A stretch of DNA of 57,646 nucleotides, filler included, from Trichosphaerium sp. ATCC 40318 (taxonomy: Eukaryota; Protista; Tubulinea): NCBI GenBank assembly GCA_038496445.1. It is 3 parts of 3 records of this genome, joined end to end, with 100 filler letters (N's around TTAATTAATTAA, not from the genome) between each part and the next. Parts side by side here need not be neighbours in the genome. Positions count along the whole stretch, not along the records: positions 1 to 23,259 come from JALMLS010000555.1; 2 more parts are not named here. One strand, written 5' to 3'. Position 1 is the stretch's first letter. Every line of letters starts with the position of its first letter. The notes below the pieces were generated by a model. The model was not told where the DNA came from. It was given only the letters and a program-made list of their open reading frames with translations, and made no database searches. Positions 5,376-17,315 of this stretch are shown piece by piece. The translations under genes were made by a program, and so were the position numbers.

Positions 5376-7228
5376 TTAAAGAGTGTTGTTGTTCTTTGCT
5401 TTGATGATTTTAATACGTTCCCTCAAGCTGAATCCAAGATCTATCAGCACATCTTTATCAATTTCATCAATTGTTGCGCCTGCATCGTTCATCAATGATC
5501 CAAGTTCTTGAGCTCTTTGATTTGCGATACCCAACTTCATCAATATTGACTTCCAATCAGTTTCAACATTTAGAACCGATTGATTCTCGTGTGGTACACC
5601 GAAATGTGACTAAACAAACGCCATTAATAACAATTGTGTTACAACAAGAAGAAAGAAGCAAAGTGGTAGAGATATGTACCTTGTTCTTGGTGTCAACAGA
5701 AACATTTGGTTTATTGAGCCACGATTGTTGATTTAAAGCGTTTAGATTATCCGATGAAGAAGAGCTGCTTCTGGAGTCATCTTCATCAAGTGTTGTACTG
5801 TCTAGTGATGAAAAGTTGTTGGCAATGTCATGCTGTGGGTTATCATCTGATTCGTCATTCTAGAATAATGATCAGTTGTCACGTGCATTGTTAGTTGTAA
5901 AGACATACTTTAAAATTTTCTTCTTGCTTTTGTATTTCAAGGGCTTCAAGGGCATCTTGAATGATATCAAGGTGATCAGGAGCATCTCCAAACTTGGTGT
6001 AATCACGATTGGGATCAACCACAGCTTTTGATAAGTACTTATCTTTTCGGTCTTCTTTTAACTCTGCATTTATTGCTTTCACAGCATCATTGTTTTTATC
6101 TTTTGCGATTACTTTATTGGCTGGTTTAAAGTGCTTGTAGATTGTCAGACAGAAAGAAAGACAAATAAGATTTCAAAGTACCTTTCGATAATTGGTGAAT
6201 GTTAACTTTTGTCGTGTTGATTCACCATAATTATTATATCCACCTGTGACCAACTGAAAGTCATGAGATATTGCCAAATAATGAAATCGTTTATTGGCAA
6301 ACTCAAGATATTTTCCAGGTAATTTTAATGGTTTGTTTGATGAGAACCAATCAATCCATTTCCCATTACCCCAACCAAACAAACAACCTTCATCATCAAT
6401 CACAAATGATGTACAGTCACCAGCATGTACAGATTTGATGTTATTGAGTCCTTTGATGATACCCTGGCCATACTCGTCATCAATACCCAACCCAAGACAC
6501 CCACGCAAGCTGTATCCAAAAGAAAATACTTGTCCTGACTTGAGGAGAACAAGTACATGATGTTCGCCAATGGCAATATCAGTGGCATCATCAATACTTG
6601 GAACACGTGAAATTGTCTTTGGATTCAAGAATAATGGTTTATCTAGCGCTTCATGTTTTGTTGTTCCCCAAAGAAAGACATGACCTGTTGATGTCATTGC
6701 TCCACTTACATAACAATTATTTTGAATTTTTTGAACATTTTGAAGATTTGGAATAACCGCTGGTGATGAAACTTTTGAATTGTCGAATGAATGACCCAAT
6801 CCTTGATATTCGTTGTATCCCCAAGAGTAGACATGACCTGATTTTGATAACGCCATACTCACACGATAGGCAGAGACTTTCGTGATATTGTTGAGATTTG
6901 GAACACGTGTTGGTGACGAAACAGGTGACGCAAAGTGACCCAGACCCAATGACCCGTTTGAATTACGGCCCCATGAATACACAATACCGTTTGAATCAAC
7001 GGCAAGGCTATGATTCCGTCCAGCAGCAATACAGACGATATTTATGACTGATTTTATTGGTCTTGCGATAGAACTCTTTCTTTCGTCTGTGTTACCCAAT
7101 TGGCGCTCATCGTTTTGTCCCCACGTGTAAACAAAGCCATCGTCTGCGATTACCATTGAATGGTCGCAACCAGTGGCCAAACGATTAACATATTGTAAAT
7201 TAACCGACGAAGTGCGAGGTTCTGCCAT
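5376..7228 (-). CDS. RCC1/BLIP-II repeat beta-propeller + linker + C-terminal SAM-like domain, copy 1 (4 exons)
   Basis: RCC1 motifs (GxxHS, VYxWGxNxxGxLG). The ORF's VL* end is an intron donor (AAG|gtactt). Spliced exons read HFKPANK..., NDESDDNPQ..., and WKSILMKLGI...IDKDVLIDLGFSLRERIKIIKA (SAM-like), stop at 5376. Confidence 0.85.
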
Positions 7229-7320
7229 GCTTGTATTGCGTTGAAATACATCAATTCAAAGCAAGTCCATTTTGATAGCCAAACAGAGAACTAGTGGTTC
7301 AATTAAAGGCTCAGCTCTAA

Positions 7321-10300
7321 ATGACTGTAGACGGCTTATTAGCTCTAAAATTGTTTCACAAAAAAATAAAGTTTGGCTTGTTCAGCTGCACCACTTGCAT
7401 GTCTGAAGTTCTACATATTCTAAAGAGGTTCACACATAGTTTATGCACTAATACAGCGGTCAAAAACCACCATTAAGATGTTTAGACGGTATAAAATGGA
7501 CCAAAAAAAAGTCAGGGCTTTTTTTTTTTCTCGCATTCTTTATGACGTTTTTTTACTCTTACTCTAACAGACAGCTTATTCTGGAATACTTGACACAACT
7601 CTAAAACAAGAATATGAAACACCTACGCAATGCGCGCATTGTCGTTTAGGTCTGAACGAAAAGCGTTCGTTAGACATGTAATCAAGGTTTTTTTTTATGG
7701 TGATACGTGTTTTAACGTACTACAGGTAGAGAAGCGGCTAAGTATAACAAAACACAACGATTGGTATAGCGTTTCATGGCAAGATATCGTAAAACTAGGC
7801 GGGGGGGCTTTAAATAGGTAAATTAGATCGTTTTACGAGTGTTATTCAACGTTTATTGTAAAATATTACAAATGGCACTTACATTATGCATAGCACGTAC
7901 GAAGGATGTTTGCGTACGCTATTAACCGATGTATACCCAAATGTTAAATGGAACAAGTGGCTTTTCAGTACGTTTGATTAAATACGCCTGTATACAGCTC
8001 CGTAGACTATTTAATGATTAACCAACGCTTAAAACGATGCGTTAGTTAAAAAAGCATAGCAGCTAACAATTTACGTTAGACGCTGTGCCATTGGACTTTT
8101 GGGAATCACAGGATAATAAAATAGCGTTTATGAATCATGTACGACACTTACACATGCTATAAAAACCCAAAACTTTTGTGTCATTCCAGAAAATTTTTCG
8201 GTTCAAAACGGACTTTTAGGTTAACTCGTCACGTGTTGTTTACTGACATGAATGTTTTATAGGTTGCTGAAACGCTAGAATACTGTTCAATGGACAGATT
8301 TTATGAACTTTCAATAGAGAAAGTTAAAAAACTAGGTGGTACACAGCTGTTAAGGTGAGTCGTATATTACATAATAAGAAAATTTTAGGATACGCTTTTT
8401 ATCTGAAACTGTGACTTATAACTCAATTAGACAGTACAGATTCTACCTTGTATCATGTATGGAGGATATATTTCGCTCTTATAAATGGTTTCCATGGCGT
8501 TTTGGTACTACTGTTGTTAGTGAGATACTTCAAGAGTTCTAATATATTTTTTTGTTGTAGTTCATCATAGCGTTCCTAAGAGTTATTGGTTAGACCTTGA
8601 TAATGTCCTGGATTGTTTTATTGAGGTACACACATTCAAGCCTTCTTAATTGTTTAGCCAATCTTCAGTGTTATGAGAAGTTTGTGGGATGAGTAAAGCG
8701 AACATCCCTTTATGAAGAAAAAACCAACCTTGAAACTTTGTCATTTTTACGTTTTTGCTTGACTATACTGACTTGTTGTAGGTTGAGCGTCTGCTTGATA
8801 TAAGAAACGTAAGGGATTGGTATAACTGTAATAATTTTGATATAACAAAATTGGGTTGTGCAAGTGTTATAACGTGCGCAAATAGTTCCAAGTTTTTTTT
8901 TACTGGTTACTCTTGTCGGTTTCATCTATTTTTATATGTACTTATTAATATTTCTTAGCCAGTTTGGTTCTTCTTTACACTTGATTGTGAAGTATATGTA
9001 CCCAGATCACGAATGGGTTCCTTGGAAGTTCAGTAAGGACCTATTTTATTTTTTCTTCAAAAAAAAAACTGTTCTTCATAACGTCTCATTAAAACTCCTT
9101 TTAGAGCAAGTGCCAAGAAATTTTTGGAATGATATTAACCACCACCGCGCTTTCTTACATTCAGTAAGTCAATCACGTGTTACACATTTTGTTTGAAGCC
9201 AAAAGAAACGAGAAATTCCTCTTTCATTAAATGACATAAAATCGCTTTATCTACCCACGTGTTTTGAGTTCTAATACTTTATCAGGCTGCTGAATATCTT
9301 AATGTGAAATATCTAGATGATTGGTATGATATTACTGTAAATGATATGAGACGTGCTGGGGGTTGTATTGTAGGGTACAGTTAAAATTAGTTAAATTTTT
9401 TTTGGGTTTTTTTTTCCGTTTTTGCAAGTATTTTTGTGTTATGTCTCACAATGATATTCCAGGGCAGCTAACCGGAAGCTACCACATATTTTACAATCCT
9501 TGTATCCTGATTATAAATGGAACTTGTCTAGGTTTAGGATTAGAACTCATGGTATGATCAAAAAAAACTAAAACAATCAAAAAAAACCACTTCTTGATTC
9601 CCAAAAGTTTACCTATCCCGAAACAAAGCCAACATCTCTTTGAAAACGAATTAACACCGTTGGCTTGTGTAGGGATTTTTTACTGTCCTTTTCGGTTGCA
9701 AGTTACTTTTATCAAAACTACAGCTTGTCCTTTACGACAATGTTGTTTTTTCTTTTCTTTTGTTCGTTTTGAACGAATTTTCTTGACTCTATGACAAGTT
9801 CAAAAAAAGCTTGTCACGTGTGCATTCTTTGTTTCTGATATTTTAAGCATGTGCTTTCTAGACTGACTTCTTTCCTTCAAAGATACACCGAGGAATTACT
9901 GGAGGGATACAGCCAATGTAAAAAAGTTTTTAGAAAGTATTGCTGAGTCTCTAGAAGTGACGTCTCCAGCAGATTGGTATAGGGTTTCTCATACCAATTT
10001 GAAGAAATATGGAGGTTCTGGGCTAATAGCATACTGGCCGCAGATTTTACATAAAGTATATCCATTACACACTTGGAAAGATGTTGAGTTTTCTACACGA
10101 GACAGAAGAACAACACAAGGGTATTTTTTTGAAAATTTAAATTATATCCAAATCCGCTTGCACTTGGCCTATTGGACTTAATTTATTATGAACTAAAGCC
10201 TGTGTGCTATATTTTTTTAGAAGTTTAGAGGAGCTCGCTCTTTATTGTGAGGGAGACGAGGCTTTTGAAGTTTTTGGTCTTTTTTTTTTGTTCGAAAAAA

Positions 10301-10990
10301 ACGCATATTTTTTCTTTCTTTTAATGGCTGTTACTTGCGTTGGTACTGACATTTTTTCAAAGGATAATGGCACAAACGCTTAAAAAGATATTTCCAAACA
10401 TGGATATCATAGAAGAATACTACCTTGGACTTCGCGGAGACGCTGATAGAGCAGTTACGTTGGATGTATTTGTACCAGATGTCAATATCGCTTTGGAGTA
10501 CATGGGCGAACAGCACTATATCGAATTTATTGGTGCGTACGGTCACGTACACCTACAAGAAGCTAGAGATGCTGAAAAAGTTCACAAGTGTAAAAAAATA
10601 GGTACATACCAAGCTTCAAGTTCGTTTCTTGTTTTTTTTTTTTTCACACTCTCAACTTCTTTAATTTCAACGCTGGTATTGACTTGAATGACTTTATTTT
10701 TCAGGAGTTTCACTTATTCCTATTCCATTTTGGTGGGATACAGGCGATGTAGATAGCTTAATTTCAACAATTTTGTATTATAGGTAACAAACACGCTTTT
10801 CTTATTATTTTCGTTTTCTTTTCAGTTTTTTTTTTCTTGTGCTTTTCAAAAACCGGTTATTTCTTCCCTTTCTCTTTCTGCTTACAGGATTTTTTCTAGA
10901 CCAGATATTAAGCTACCAAAACCTGATGTTAGTCCGTTATTAGAAATACCGGAAAAATCAAAGAAGGAGATTTTTGGAAGTACGTTGTAG
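7321..10990 (+). CDS. Intron-rich protein with tandem DWYxV..GG..YP..W.PWKF..VP..FW repeats and a C-terminal PD-(D/E)XK (Vsr/DUF559-like) nuclease-like domain; 5' end uncertain
   Basis: Exons encode NDWYSVSWQDIVKLGGG, YPDHEWVPWKF, VPRNFWND, ADWYRVSHTNLKKYGGSGL, then LDVFVPDVNIALEYMGEQHY...RDAEK..CKK..LIPIPFWWD. Confidence 0.7.
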
Positions 10991-11857
10991 GAAGAGCAAA
11001 CCGACTTTCGTCAACTATCCAGTTTGCTTTTTTTTTTCTTTGACATGACATTTGTTGGGGATTCACTGCTCACTTCTCTGTTTAGTTGTAGCAATATCAA
11101 AGCTCATGAGTGCTAATTCATTTGCCTCTTTTGAAGACAGTGTACATATGTGATAAAAAGTATCAGCTTGATTTGATTGTCAAGCATTTATTTGTAATGG
11201 CAAAGGTTAACTTGGATAATTGATAGTGCTTAGAACAGTGTTAGGAACTAGAGCTGTGCTTCATTTTCCTGTTACTCGCTCATTGCGCTCAATAGTTTGA
11301 TATTAGGCCTAGTGATAGAGTCCTATTAGCTTCTTAATAGCTAAGCCAATAAGACGAAAATAATAAACTCAATAAGGCTGTAATGAAAATCGTGTTTTTA
11401 GGAAGGAGTTTGGTAAACAAAGAACAAAACAGGATTTTTTACTGCAAAGGATTTTTAGTGTTTTTATGAGCTGGTAGCAGCTCGTACATACACCGAATAT
11501 TGTCTTTTGGAAATAGCTTATTGTATTTATTTGTATCATCACTGGGTGCAATAAAGCATTGTTCATGCCTCTGCCTAGCTGTGCACCTCCACGTGATCAC
11601 TTTAGAAAGAGTGTATATGCCTTTAACTGTTACTGTGGCCATGAACCAGTGCTCATGTAACAGCAAACAGACTGTTTGAAACATATGGTGGTTGGAAGCT
11701 ATCCAAGGGCAATAGCTTCTATAGGTGGAACCAAATAATAGTAAAACATTTTATGCTTCTAACTGAGTTTTATTTGTTCAACACTACAATTTTTGTTCAT
11801 TTATTTTTCCCTTCGTTCTATTCATGTTAAACGGTTTTTATCAAATGGTGCTGAGTT

Positions 11858-13886
11858 TTAAAGAGTGTTGTTGTTCTTTGCTTTGATGATTTTAATACGT
11901 TCCCTCAAACTGAATCCAAGATCTATCAGCACATCTTTATCAATTTCATCAATTGTTGCGCCTGCATCGTTCATCAATGATCCAAGTTCTTGAGCTCTTT
12001 GATTTGCGATACCCAACTTCATCAATATTGACTTCCAATCAGTTTCAACATTTAGAACTGATTGATTCTCATGTGGTACACCGAAATGTGACTAAACAAA
12101 CGCCATTAATAACAATTAAGTGTTACAACAAGAAGAAAGAAGCAAAGTCGTGGAAGTGTACCTTATTCTTTATGTCAACAGAAACATTTGGTTTATTGAG
12201 CCATGATTGTCGCCTTAGGTTGTCAGATGAAGAGGAGCTGCTTCTAAAATCGTCACCAGGTGCTGGACTCTGATAAGACGATTTCTTTGGTGATGAAGAG
12301 TTGTTGGCTATGTCATGCTGTGGCATACTATTTTCCTCTAATTCATAATACTAGGAACCAATTAGTTGTAACATTCATCTCGCATGTGCAGTATTTTATA
12401 AAGCAAATGGTACCTCATTGTTGGCTTCAACAGATACATTTGGTTTATTGCTCCAGGATTGTTGATTTAACACTTGGTTGTTTGATAATGTTTCATCAAC
12501 TATCAGACTATACTTGCGTTGGTTACAATCCTACAAATGTCAGTAAGTTGTTCACCTTATAGTGAGACGTACAGAGTTATTTTGTTGCTGTATGTTCAAG
12601 CCTTCAAGTGCATCTTGAATCATGTCAAGGTGTTCAGTAGTATCTCCAAATTTGGTGTAGTCATGACTGGGATCAATCACAGCTTTTGACAAGTACTTAT
12701 CTTTTCTGTCTTCTTTTAACTCTGCATTCATTGCTTTCACAGCATCATCGTTTTTATCTTTTATTGTTACTTTATTGGCTGGTTTAAAGTGCTTGTAGAT
12801 TGTCAGACAAAAAGAAAGACAAATAAGATTTCAAAGTACCTTTTCATAATTGGCGAATGTTAACTTTTGTGGTGTTGATTCACTATAATCATTATCTCCG
12901 CCTGTGACCAACTGAAAGTCATGAGATATTGCCAAGGAATGAAATTGTTTATTGGCAAACTCAAGATATTTTCCAGGAAATTTTAATGGTTTGTTTGATG
13001 AGAACGAATCAATCCATTCCCCATTACCCCAACCAAACAAACAACCTTCATCATCAATCGCAAATGATGTCCACACACCAGCATGTACAGATTTGATGTT
13101 ATTGAGTCCTTTGATGATACCCTGGCCATACTTGTCATCAATACCCAACCCAAGACGCCCATTCAAGTTGCCTCCAAAAGAAAATACTTGTCCTGACTTG
13201 AGGAGAACAAGTACATGATAGCCGCCAATGGCAATATCAGTGGCATCATCAATACTTGGAACACGTGAAATTGTCTTTGGATTCAAGAATAATGATTTAT
13301 CTTTTGCTTCATCTTCTGTTGTTCCCCAAAGAAAGACATGACCTGTTGATGTCATTGCTCCACTTACACACAAGTTAGTTTGAATTTTTTGAACATTTTG
13401 AAGATTTGGAATAACCGCTGGTGATGAAACTTTCTTCTTGTCGAATGAATGACCCAATCCTTGATTTATGTTGTTTCCCCAAGAGTAGACATGACCTGAT
13501 TTTGATAACGCCATACTTGCAAAATAGGCAGATACTTGCGTGATATTGTTGAGATTTGGAACACGTGTTGGTGACGAAACAGGTGACGCAAAGTGACCCA
13601 GACCCAATTCACCATCTGAATTACAGCCCCATGCATACACAATACCGTTTGAATCAACTGCAACGCTATGCCAGGCTCCAGCAGCAATACAAACGATATT
13701 TATGAATGATTTTATTGGTCTTGCGATAGAACTCCAGAATTCGTCTGTATTACCCAATTGACGCTTATTATTTAGTCCCCACGTGTAAACAAAGCCATCG
13801 TCTGCGATTACCATTGAATGTTCGTAACCAGTGGCCAAACGGTTAACATATTGTAAATTAACCGACGAAGTTTGAGGTTCTGCCAT
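11858..13886 (-). CDS. RCC1 repeat + SAM-like domain protein, copy 2 (one extra linker exon)
   Basis: Near-identical scaffold and SAM exon to copy 1. Start at MAEPQ (13886) by homology. Extra exon repeats the QQSWxNKPNVSV module. Confidence 0.85.
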
Positions 13887-15434
13887 AATAACCCCGCAAT
13901 ACTGTAAAAGAAATTCGGCGACAGCTTTCAATTTTTTTTCGCGAAGATGCCTTCATCTGCTTTCTACGCGTTTTTATTGCTATTGGCAGTATGTACCTGT
14001 GTCATAAATGCTCAAGGGGATTGTTTTTATCATTGCCCGAAAGGAAAGCTAAAACTCAATGCTGAGTAATTCTAACAGCGAATAGGCAGCGTTAAGATGG
14101 TAAATACAAAACACACGCCCACAGCCAATGGATGTGGTGCAATGGGCATACAAGTACGTAAGCGCATCATTTTTAGCGTCTAGATGATGTTTTAAGCGTT
14201 GTTTATTGATAATCAAGTAAAGTAGCATTAAAGAGCGCTGATTCCCTTCTAGGTATCATCCAAGTTCGATTTTACAAGCTGTTGCAACCGTCATGATTAT
14301 TGTTACGATACATGCAGAAAAGACAAAAAAAAGTGTGATGACGCATTCCACGTACGCTAAGAGATGCAGTGGTTATTTTTTTGTGCTTCAATCGCGTTTC
14401 ATGTGCTATTTGAACAAAAAACCGCTCAAAACTGATCAAACAACGCATGAAATCGAATTAAATGCTTCTTTATTGTCTTTCTTGTCTAACTTCTTTTTTT
14501 TCTGTAGCAATGCATGCAAACGCACTGTAGAAAACAATACAAAGCGACTCTCAACATAAATGAATGTTTGGGAATGGTACGGTCGCTTTTTAAACCTCAG
14601 CGTCCGTTTTCACAAAAAGTGACGATTTCTCTTTTTTTCAAAAAAACAATTTTTTATGGTGTTCCTACGTACTCCAAGGCCCAAAGGACTTTGTATTACT
14701 ATAAAACAACTATTTATAAATCTATTCCATACATTACTGGATTTGTTTGACGGTCATGAGAGGCGATAGGCTTTTTTTACTTTTTTCTTTTTTTATTCTT
14801 ATTTTTTTTTTTCTTTAGGCCAAAACGTACTATAGTGGTACTCTCATTTTCGGATGTACTCCATTCTTGGAAAGTCAACAAAACGCTTGCACGTGTGTTA
14901 AGAAAAAGCCAAAAGATTATGATGCTAAACAAGCTGCAAAGAAATCAAAAAAAGCGAAAGACAAGCCAAAGTACGAGCTTTAAAAAAAAAATAATAAACA
15001 TTCCATTCTCGTACATACCTTCAAGCTTGTTTTCAATGTGTATAGCTTTTGCTTAACCAAACCACAACATTCAACTTTACAGCAATACTGTTGCTTGAAT
15101 ACTAAAACGCCTTGCTTGTACTGACCTTGAAGTACTTCTTCCTCGCTGTATGTCCAAATATCTCTATGTATCGTGTATTTACCATCAAGACTCGTTCTTA
15201 TAGTTATTCACAAATAGAGTCTCTTACCTCTTCTTTCTCCTAAAACTCACCTTCGCTTTTATTGTTGTTGTACCATCCTTCCCATGTTCTAATGTCATTT
15301 GTTATCATGCCTTCTCTACGTGATTTAATGTATTTAAACATTTCCATGTATTACATATTTTGATGTTACTTAGACGCCACAATAATGCTGTAGCTACACA
15401 TTTGATACTAACTAAAGGGAGCTTTATTGAACGT

Positions 15435-17315
15435 TTACAATTGTTTGTCTTGGTACTCAATAAAGTCAAGACGCTCAAGTACAGTGAATCCAAGCCTTTT
15501 CATAACCTTTCCTGTGACATCATTCAAGTCAACGCACATACGATTCAGTTTGGATCCAAATTTTTGTGCTCTTGATTTGTCAAACCCTGCTGATATCAAA
15601 GTACTCACCCACTCAATTTTTTCACTTGATTGTACGGTTCTTTCAGACGGTTTCGGCTTCTAACAGAAGTGAGTATAATCAATAAAAAACGGTAGCTTGT
15701 ACATTCACTTTAGCAACATCTGAATGAGTTGTAACAAATGGTGTACTAGATAAGTTGATGGTATTCTAAAAACCAGTTAATTAATACAAAATAAACATTT
15801 TTTATATTGATGTACCTTCTTGTCAATTACGGAAATATTTGGTTTATTTATCCATGAATTTTGAGGCATTGCTGCTCTTGGATCATTTTGTATGTTGTCA
15901 GAACGATTATCATCATTTGGTTGGTCATACTTCTTTATCACTATTAGCTATACTATTTGATTAGAACATACCTTATTGTAGTCTTTATGGCTTTGACTTA
16001 TGTTGAGGAAGTTGTTGTCTTGATTTTGGTGTATTTTAAAGGCTTCAAGGGCATCTTGAATGATATCAAGGTGATCAGGATCATCTCCAAACTTGGTGTA
16101 ATCACGATTGGGCTCAACCACGGCTTTTGACAAGTACTTATCTTTTCTGTCTTCTTTTAACTCTGCATTCATTGCTTTCATGTCATTGTCTTTGGCTTTG
16201 CAAGTATCTTTGTTTGTTTGCTAATGACTTGTCAAATAGACAGAAAGATGAATGAGATTACAAAGTACCTTTTGGTGATTGTTGAATGTTAACTTTTGTC
16301 GTGTTGATTCACCACAATAATTATCTCCACCTGTGACCAACTGAAAGTCATGAGATATTGCCAAGTAATGCCATTGTTTATTGGCAAACTCAAGATATTT
16401 TCCAGGTAATTTTAATGGTTTGTTTGATGAGAACGAATCAATCCATTTCCCTTTACCCCAACCAAACAAACAACCTTCATCATCAATCGCAAATGATGTA
16501 CAGTAACCAGAATGTACAGATTTGATGTTATTGAGTCCTTTGATGATACCCTGGCCATACTCATCATCAATACCCAACCCAAGACGCCCATTGTCGTTGT
16601 ATCCAAAAGAAAATACTTGTCCTGACTTGAGGAGAACAAGTACATGCCTAAAACCAATGGCAATATCAGTGGCATCATCAATACTTGGAACACGTGAAAT
16701 TGTCTTTGGATTCAAGAATAATGATTTATCTATTGCTTTATATGGTGTTGTTCCCCAAAGAAAGACATGACCTGTTGACGTCATTGCTCCACTTACAAAC
16801 AAATTAGTTTGAATTTTTTGAACATTTTGAAGATTTGGAATAACCGCTGGTGATGAAACTTGAAAATTGTCGAATGAATGACCCAATCCTTGATATTCGT
16901 TGTCTCCCCAAGAGTAGACATGACCTGATTTTGATAATGCCATACTCACACGATAGGCAGAGACTTTCGTGATATTGTTGAGATTTGGAACACGTGTTGG
17001 TGACGAAACAGGTGACGCAAAGTCACCCAGACCCAATGACCCGTTTGAATTACGGCCCCATGAATACACAATACCGTTTGAATCAACGGCAAGGCTATGA
17101 TTCCGTCCAGCAGCAATACAGACGATATTTATGACTGATTTTATTGGTCTTGCGATAGAACTCTTTTTTTCGTCTGTGTTACCCAATTGGTGCTCATTGT
17201 TTTGTCCCCACGTGTAAACAAAGCCATCGTCTGCGATTACCATTGAATGTTCGTAACCAGTGGCCAAACGGTTAAAATATTGTAATTTAACTGACGAAGA
17301 TTGTAGTTCTGCCAT
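15435..17315 (-). CDS. RCC1 repeat + divergent SAM-like domain protein, copy 3
   Basis: RCC1 exon near-identical to copies 1/2 with the same donor (AAG|gtactt) and the same KAMNAELKEDRKDKY exon. Last exon WVSTLISAGFDKSRAQKFGSKL...KRLGFTVLERLDF aligns with the SAM exon of copies 1/2. Confidence 0.8.

Follow-up and report, generated by a model that had tools for sequence, protein, structure and literature searches.

Hypervariable RCC1-like propellers with a predicted SAM-like tail form a candidate recognition-receptor repertoire in the amoeba Trichosphaerium

What role might be served by a family of proteins whose members share a nearly fixed scaffold and differ radically at a few recurring positions? 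This question is raised by three genes for RCC1-like propellers in Trichosphaerium sp. ATCC 40318 (assembly GCA_038496445.1). They lie at positions 5376 to 17315 of the window, i.e., the whole stretch of 57,646 nucleotides (nt) that was analyzed, in a piece (positions 1 to 23259) that corresponds to contig C446 (JALMLS010000555.1). We found that they belong to a large family in which 32 codons, all of them placed on one face of the modeled propeller, are under diversifying selection, and we consider that the family probably constitutes a repertoire of recognition receptors. The genes, designated A, B, and C, are seen as minus-strand open reading frames (ORFs) of 351 to 366 amino acids (aa) at 6176 to 7228, 12834 to 13886, and 16263 to 17315, respectively. 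All three match the RCC1-like family PF25390 (E value of ~1e-59; 199 to 203 bits versus a curated cutoff of 150), as well as Pfam RCC1 (PF00415) and RCC1_2 repeats. Their similarity begins at the ATG codon and stops just past the stop codon, and the proteins are 85 to 88% identical in pairwise comparisons. The original prediction described near-identical propellers with multibase changes at recurrent positions, and the eight motif triplets on which it was based (ERK/EFW/EKK, GRNH/GAWH/GRNH, YRV/YFA/YRV, KHEAL/EDEAK/PYKAI, GEHH/GGYH/GFRH, YSLRGC/GNLNGR/YNDNGR, GDCT/GVWT/GYCT, and YNNY/DNDY/DNYC) were all recovered in register. Among the 351 codons compared, 81 were variable, 66 with an amino acid change and 15 with silent changes only. 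Many variable codons carried two or three base changes, and these clustered at residues 50-51, 71-72, 122-123, 151, 191-195, 222-223, 239-244, 271-272, and 331-335.

A search of the genome of the organism itself (70.3 Mb in 642 contigs) with the propeller exon (exon 1) gave at least 114 matches, about 50 of which were open and full length with 60 to 92% identity. The copies are organized in arrays on contigs C168, C171, C226, C446, and others and on C104, which alone holds about 19 copies within 213 kb; the arrays also hold fragments and stop-containing copies. In several locus pairs (L001/L005, L003/L022, L015/L028, L009/L013, and L038/L039, among others) the upstream kilobases are 94 to 99.7% identical, so these copies are recent segmental duplicates; two copies with shared flanks sit on one contig. 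The best outside sequence identity was only 35%, and word-index searches of protein collections, with either all of exon 1 or its N-terminal half as the query, returned nothing above 38% identity. No relatives were found among the viral contigs of IMG/VR, and there is therefore no sign of a giant-virus origin. The family is lineage specific and tandemly arrayed in this marine amoeba, with about 50 intact copies in addition to fragments. As a separate observation, C446 is collinear, in reverse orientation, with part of C104 (66000 to 90000): gene C corresponds to C104:68058, gene B to 71483, a DUF559-like gene to 83113, and gene A to 86584. Upstream flanks in this stretch are 94 to 98.6% identical, and C104 has two additional RCC1 genes in between. 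The collinearity is explained either by duplication of a segment or by a second haplotype that differs in copy number.

Selection was evaluated on 47 aligned full-length copies, using a tree of the 46 distinct sequences and per-codon counts of synonymous and nonsynonymous changes obtained by parsimony. Across the 46 copies, the global ratio of nonsynonymous to synonymous substitution rates (dN/dS, or omega) for exon 1 was 0.70. At 32 codons the nonsynonymous rate exceeded the synonymous rate of the whole gene by a factor of 2.6 to 5.4, with Bonferroni-corrected significance, versus an omega of 0.44 for the other 317 sites, many of which were near zero. In gene A these codons lie within 6182 to 7228 (minus strand) and encode residues 21, 22, 38, 40, 41, 50, 71, 72, 88, 90, 91, 93, 122, 140, 141, 151, 172, 191, 195, 222, 223, 239, 241, 242, 271, 272, 288, 296, 314, 315, 331, and 333, where residue n occupies window positions 7228-3n+1 to 7228-3(n-1). 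A binomial test of each site against its own synonymous count had low power (13 sites at an uncorrected P value of <0.05) and was replaced by the gene-wide comparison. Up to 15 residue types occur in a single hypervariable column. The 32-site signatures are unique in all 46 copies, with a median pairwise difference of 27 of 32, and most loop words are singletons. The notion of hypervariable loops on a fixed scaffold, put forward in the original prediction from three genes, thus holds across the family.

Recent duplicates, whose comparison is independent of the tree, gave the same result. Pairs with flanks 94 to 99.7% identical differ at 8 to 30 of the 32 hypervariable residues. Silent divergence in their scaffolds is 0.03 to 0.06, versus a proportion of nonsynonymous differences (pN) of 0.15 to 0.61 at the 32 sites (a ratio of about 5 to 14). 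In several of these pairs, pN exceeds the corresponding synonymous proportion (pS) over the whole exon, a comparison that needs no selection of sites. At the nucleotide level, the hypervariable codons diverge by 12 to 56%, versus 1 to 4% for the remaining exon, and half of the changed hypervariable codons carry two or three base changes each. The pair L038 (C168:8018-9067) and L039 (C40:353250-354299), with flanks 99.7% identical, was noted separately. Its eight differing hypervariable residues are all in blades 1 to 3, no silent change occurs in those codons, and Tyr is the new residue in five cases. This pattern could mean that a local burst took place very recently or that a short tract was converted.

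The composition of the hypervariable sites is also distinctive. Tyr (4.3-fold), Arg (4-fold), Glu (3.6-fold), Cys (3.4-fold), and Trp (2.4-fold) are enriched, and a composition rich in these residues is typical of protein-binding hot spots. With regard to a diversity-generating retroelement, which would combine a reverse transcriptase with a template repeat and adenine-directed changes, the analysis covered codon composition: the second codon position is 54% A, and the third position resembles that of the scaffold. Exchange between paralogs was detected by a GENECONV-like run test, in which 103 of 1,035 pairs had identical runs exceeding all 200 permutations. Of the differing loops, 26% had both variants present in other paralogs. 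The diversity appears to come mainly from new substitutions fixed at the 32 codons, with segment exchange between paralogs adding to it.

The AlphaFold2 model of gene A exon 1 (predicted local distance difference test score [pLDDT] of 88.7) contains 27 strands. Foldseek aligned it with UVR8 at a template modeling score of 0.86 and a root mean square deviation (rmsd) of 2.4 to 3.0 Å, and a sequence search of the PDB likewise identified UVR8 (E value of 5.8e-45). When the seven blades were stacked, 28 of the 32 sites fell at just six positions of the blade register, which together make up 42 of the 349 residues (hypergeometric P value of ~1e-26, for a register picked after inspection of the data). 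These positions are both x residues of GxxH and residues x1, x3, x4, and x6 after WG. In the model, they lie in two connections of each blade, namely, the strand 2-3 hairpin and the loop that joins strand 4 to the following blade. The four remaining sites (50, 151, 195, and 296) belong to the strand 4-to-next-blade loop as well. Because both connections of an antiparallel four-strand meander emerge on the same side, all 32 sites are confined to one face of the modeled propeller, a placement based on strand topology and the UVR8 alignment, not on measured distances. The sites at which dN/dS exceeds 1 thus accord with the single variable face that had been anticipated. In the PDB alignment, variable sites fall on UVR8 W198, W250, and W302 (the residue after WG) and on W233-R234, W285-R286, and W337-R338 of GWRHT. 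The Trp residues in question are located at the UVR8 dimer interface (PMC7455749).

Each propeller is followed by further exons. Gene A exon 1 (6182 to 7228, minus strand; 349 aa) encodes the seven-blade RCC1-like propeller (PF25390, E value of 2.3e-59), beginning with the ATG at 7228 and ending with a Lys codon before the donor GTACTT, a donor that is conserved in most paralogs. Exon 2 (5909 to 6133, minus strand; 75 aa; GT-AG, phase 0) encodes a charged, probably helical linker with the motif DYTKFGD...IQDALEA; it is 38 to 96% conserved across most paralogs, and its short ORF version matched no Pfam family. Exon 3 (5680 to 5859, minus strand; 60 aa) encodes an acidic, Ser-rich linker ending in SWLNKPNVSV, and exon 4 (5376 to 5609, minus strand; 77 aa plus a TAA stop) encodes the SAM-like helical domain. 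The introns (5610 to 5679, 5860 to 5908, and 6134 to 6181) are all GT-AG, in phase 0, and 48 to 70 nt long. Their donors (GTATGT/GTACTT) and ACTAAC- or CTGAC-like branch motifs give this amoebozoan a yeast-like style of splice signal. Genes B and C share the layout of gene A. Their propeller exons (12840 to 13886 and 16269 to 17315, respectively, minus strand) were set from Pfam matches and the paralog donor, and their downstream exons were set by homology. For gene B (11858 to 12791, minus strand), these are exon 2 at ~12567 to 12791, exon 3-like segments at ~12414 to 12473 and ~12162 to 12338, and exon 4 at 11858 to 12091, the protein of which is identical to that of gene A. For gene C (15435 to 16217, minus strand), they are exon 2 at ~16008 to 16217, exon 3 at ~15828 to 15914, and exon 4 at ~15435 to 15659, which represents a second SAM-like subtype, 27% identical to gene A exon 4. 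In gene B, the SW.NKPNVSV segment is doubled (12157 to 12217 and 12409 to 12469; repeat family D6), which suggests an exon duplication in its linker. With the exons analyzed one by one, no signal peptide or membrane helix was found in any of them (maximum Kyte-Doolittle score of 1.18).

The splicing of the propeller to a SAM-like exon had been proposed from the sequence of the three genes. Genomewide, a same-strand SAM-like ORF lies downstream of exon 1 in 48 of 50 loci, at a median distance of 534 nt, and transcript evidence proves the arrangement for one divergent paralog. The protein P0040, a 596-aa ORF marked "complete" in a JGI/IMG listing, contains an RCC1-like domain and a SAM-like tail; it clusters with P0044, an MMETSP transcript record that differs from it by one residue. 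Every residue of P0040 is accounted for by three exons at C104:203246-205218, separated by GT-AG introns of 60 and 125 nt. The splicing is thus real in this paralog, which shares 40% identity with gene A. A second protein, P0041, derives from MMETSP0405 (Trichosphaerium sp. ATCC 40318) and matches contig C11 by 97 to 98%; it also contains the SWLNKPNVSV motif of exon 3. These transcript-protein matches place the host in Amoebozoa, in agreement with the protist origin initially assumed; they led us to reject a fungal origin, which the GTATGT...ACTAAC intron signals had suggested. The P0041 gene (locus L058, C11) was additionally observed to encode a SAM-like tail behind an N-terminal part that had no Pfam hit.

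Exon 4 is predicted to adopt a compact SAM-like fold of about 60 to 70 residues. Its AlphaFold2 model, built from an alignment of 21 paralog exons, has a pLDDT of 83 and consists of four helices and a short helical turn. In a structural search of 48,161 PDB representatives, the second homology domain of Sla1 (SHD2) ranked first, with a Z score of 9.1, near the level common for small helical models, and an rmsd of 1.7 Å over 61 residues. The remaining matches were mostly SAM domains at Z scores of 4 to 6.5 (Tric1, ASK3, DGK-delta, SARM1, TIR-1, BICC1, Eph, Shank, and tankyrase), and SAM domains dominated the Foldseek list. The SAM fold named in the original prediction is thus seen in the predicted structure and is not recognized by sequence profiles: no Pfam SAM family (SAM_1, SAM_2, and related families) matched any of the 21 members scanned at E values of up to 1, and an Atlas feature search gave leads only (SAM_TNK and SAM_1/2 at 0.85 to 0.87). 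When an exon 4 profile was compared with 1.84 billion representative proteins, only two real relatives (P0040 and P0041) were found, and none came from outside this organism. The tail occurs in other contexts in the genome. At L062:2023-2934 (minus strand) it shares one open frame with an EH/EF-hand region. SPRY and LRR_6 domains are present 0.6 to 2.5 kb upstream of a SAM-like tail on the same strand, with putative linkage, at L063:5918-7344 (plus strand), L065:2095-3200 (minus strand), and L064:4148-5395 (minus strand).

Taken together, these features suggest how the proteins may work. Each gene encodes a soluble protein comprising an N-terminal seven-blade RCC1-like propeller, a charged/acidic linker (exons 2 and 3), and a C-terminal SAM-like domain (exon 4). 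The propeller is a rigid scaffold kept by purifying selection, on which two loops per blade (the GxxH hairpin and the WGxNxxGx loop into the next blade) are intensely diversified and together form one face, so that each paralog would display a different binding surface. The variable face would bind diverse ligands, and the constant tail would link this binding to self-association, perhaps by polymerization, or to a shared partner. The outcome would be an intracellular recognition repertoire directed against viruses or bacteria or used for allorecognition after cell fusion. A repertoire for the recognition of non-self or allogeneic partners is, in our view, the likelier role of the family.

Several points weigh against this reading. 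Synonymous counts are also higher in the hypervariable class (7.5 versus 4.2), which could reflect multihit paths or a locally raised mutation rate. The site-wise test relied on parsimony and one tree despite recombination, and a PHI-type (pairwise homoplasy index) recombination test was marginal (the observed value was not exceeded in 17 of 300 permutations), less clear than the run test. The SAM assignment comes from predicted structure only, and a PDB sequence profile search with exon 4 gave no match at E values of up to 10. No transcripts of hypervariable members were found in public protein collections, including this organism's transcriptome, so that the RCC1-to-SAM splicing stands on transcripts for the divergent paralog and on gene layout for the others. 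The family, its architecture, and the site-specific diversification confined to one face are shown by the data; what we infer is that the propellers bind ligands, that the SAM-like domain signals, and, from the evolutionary pattern and architecture, that the proteins serve in immunity or recognition.

The alternatives differ in how they account for the diversity. Relaxed surface loops, decaying pseudogenes, or assembly artifacts in a repeated array would require no selection for diversity; fragments and stop-containing copies do occur in the arrays, and some contigs may be haplotigs of others (L038 and L039 are nearly identical, and L040 and L041 are identical). Neutral sites, however, cannot outpace the silent rate, and the excess in recent pairs is 5- to 14-fold; in about 50 copies the reading frame is still open and the splice donor conserved, omega for the scaffold is 0.44, and the changes are in frame and affect whole codons. 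Because the rate exceeds the silent rate, we regard neutral and artifactual readings as excluded, with a negligible probability left to them. At the other extreme, the 32 codons might be actively targeted, by programmed mutation or templated microconversion, possibly somatically among the many nuclei, which would yield an adaptive-like repertoire. Hints in this direction are that in duplicates with flanks 97 to 99.7% identical the hypervariable codons diverge 10 to 14 times faster than the remaining exon, that two- or three-base changes are frequent, that synonymous counts are raised, and that a quarter of the differing loops (the 26% given above) use words shared with other paralogs. This idea is improbable, and we leave it a small chance because the changes are fast and confined to particular codons.

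Other readings accept the selection and assign it a different purpose. If the family mediated allorecognition or fusion incompatibility in particular, the variable propellers would recognize polymorphic partner proteins of another individual after cytoplasmic mixing, in the manner of the fungal HET-E and HET-D proteins. The predicted cytosolic location, the extreme and copy-specific diversity, and the general parallel with the hypervariable WD40 face of fungal NOD-like receptors (NLRs) are consistent with such a role. The same is true of the biology of Trichosphaerium, which is multinucleate, with a complex life cycle and signs of sexual development (PMC10521059). A genome with about 50 paralogs, however, points to a repertoire more than to a small number of polymorphic loci. 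As a specific explanation, allorecognition is unlikely. Less probable still are endocytic or phagocytic adaptors, the tail of which would dock trafficking proteins and the propeller of which would select cargo or prey-derived ligands. In structure, the tail comes closest to the endocytic adaptor domain Sla1 SHD2 (Z score of 9.1), and the same tail ends EH-domain genes in this genome, in one open frame at L062:2023-2934; a shared fold nevertheless does not show function, the tail also follows SPRY and possibly LRR domains and so has the appearance of a general module, and trafficking adaptors are normally conserved, not driven at 5 to 14 times the silent rate. An expanded set of guanine-nucleotide exchange factors or regulators, each matched to one small GTPase, would make the face a matter of partner specificity rather than conflict. 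RCC1 does bind Ran through its propeller face (1i2m was among the fold matches), and RPGR and other RCC1-like domains bind GTPase-related partners. It would be very surprising, in light of 46 unique signatures among 46 copies and of recent duplicates that swap up to 30 of 32 sites at 3 to 6% silent divergence, unlike stable enzyme-substrate pairs. The adaptor and exchange-factor readings are weaker rivals than the recognition role.

Between genes A and B lies a multiexon gene (7600 to 10700, plus strand) with repeated DWY.VS...GG modules. Its last ORF (10340 to 10687) was grouped by the ESM Atlas with DUF559-like (Vsr/PD-(D/E)XK-type) phage proteins at 0.92 to 0.93. The DUF559-like gene has at least 133 matches genomewide, and near-identical copies adjoin other RCC1 arrays (C104:1836, C104:83113, and C168:132345).

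The published draft genome of Trichosphaerium sp. ATCC 40318 comprises 70.87 Mb in 710 scaffolds with a G+C content of 37.7% and was reported to contain unusually many giant-virus genes; RCC1 is not mentioned in that paper (PMC10521059). If our interpretation is correct, the family would add a new class to the candidate receptors of innate immunity or allorecognition, and this in Amoebozoa, the recognition systems of which are little known. It would also serve to test how much site-specific diversification selection can achieve by itself, and it would supply a natural collection of binders built on a stable propeller. Receptor families with a hypervariable face on a fixed scaffold have been built on LRRs in plants and lampreys, on WD40, ANK, and TPR repeats in fungal NLRs, and on immunoglobulin folds. 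Here, the same evolutionary solution would have been reached with an RCC1 propeller and a SAM-like tail.

Among known proteins, the RCC1-like domains of UVR8, RCC1, HERC2, and RPGR share with the family the seven-blade propeller and the GxxH and WGxxxxGxLG blade motifs. The variable positions described here are the dimer-interface positions of UVR8; the Trp and Arg positions (GWRHT and the interface Trp) that are conserved in UVR8 are hypervariable in Trichosphaerium, with 8 to 15 residue types per column. The family is set apart from this group by its about 50 paralogs, by its SAM-like tail, and by the absence of HECT or other catalytic partner domains (no HECT domain was detected by Pfam in any exon). 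HERC5 and HERC6 provide a precedent for an RCC1-like domain in innate antiviral defense, and rapid evolution is reported for them (PMC7775381). In contrast to the Trichosphaerium proteins, they are HECT ubiquitin/ISG15 ligases, are few in number, and are not known to show blade-periodic hypervariability of this degree. The putative tail would resemble the small SAM folds of the immune proteins SARM1/TIR-1 and SAMD9 and of Sla1 SHD2 in serving as a constant assembly or docking module, although, unlike SARM1/TIR-1 and SAMD9, the proteins have no sequence-level SAM signature and no effector domain, whether TIR or another.

BLIP-II (3qi0 and 3qhy among the fold matches, titled as picomolar binding) offers a parallel for the proposed binding face, in that its RCC1-like seven-blade propeller acts purely in tight protein binding. 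BLIP-II binds via aromatic-rich loops on one face; it differs from the family in being bacterial, secreted, single copy, and not hypervariable and in having no SAM-like tail. The fungal HET-E/HET-D/HNWD NLRs are intracellular receptors with a WD40 propeller in which a few interaction-face positions per blade diversify, accompanied by recombination or concerted evolution. No NACHT/NB-ARC NTPase and no HET or other N-terminal effector domain was found by Pfam in the Trichosphaerium genes, with RCC1 families only in exon 1 and nothing in exons 2 to 4. The blades are of the RCC1 rather than the WD40 type, and the diversity resides between paralogs, not among near-identical repeats within a gene; by inspection of the blade stack, the blades within one Trichosphaerium protein clearly differ from one another, unlike HNWD repeats. 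What the two systems have in common is that selection diversifies a few fixed positions in each blade, all of them on a single face of the propeller.

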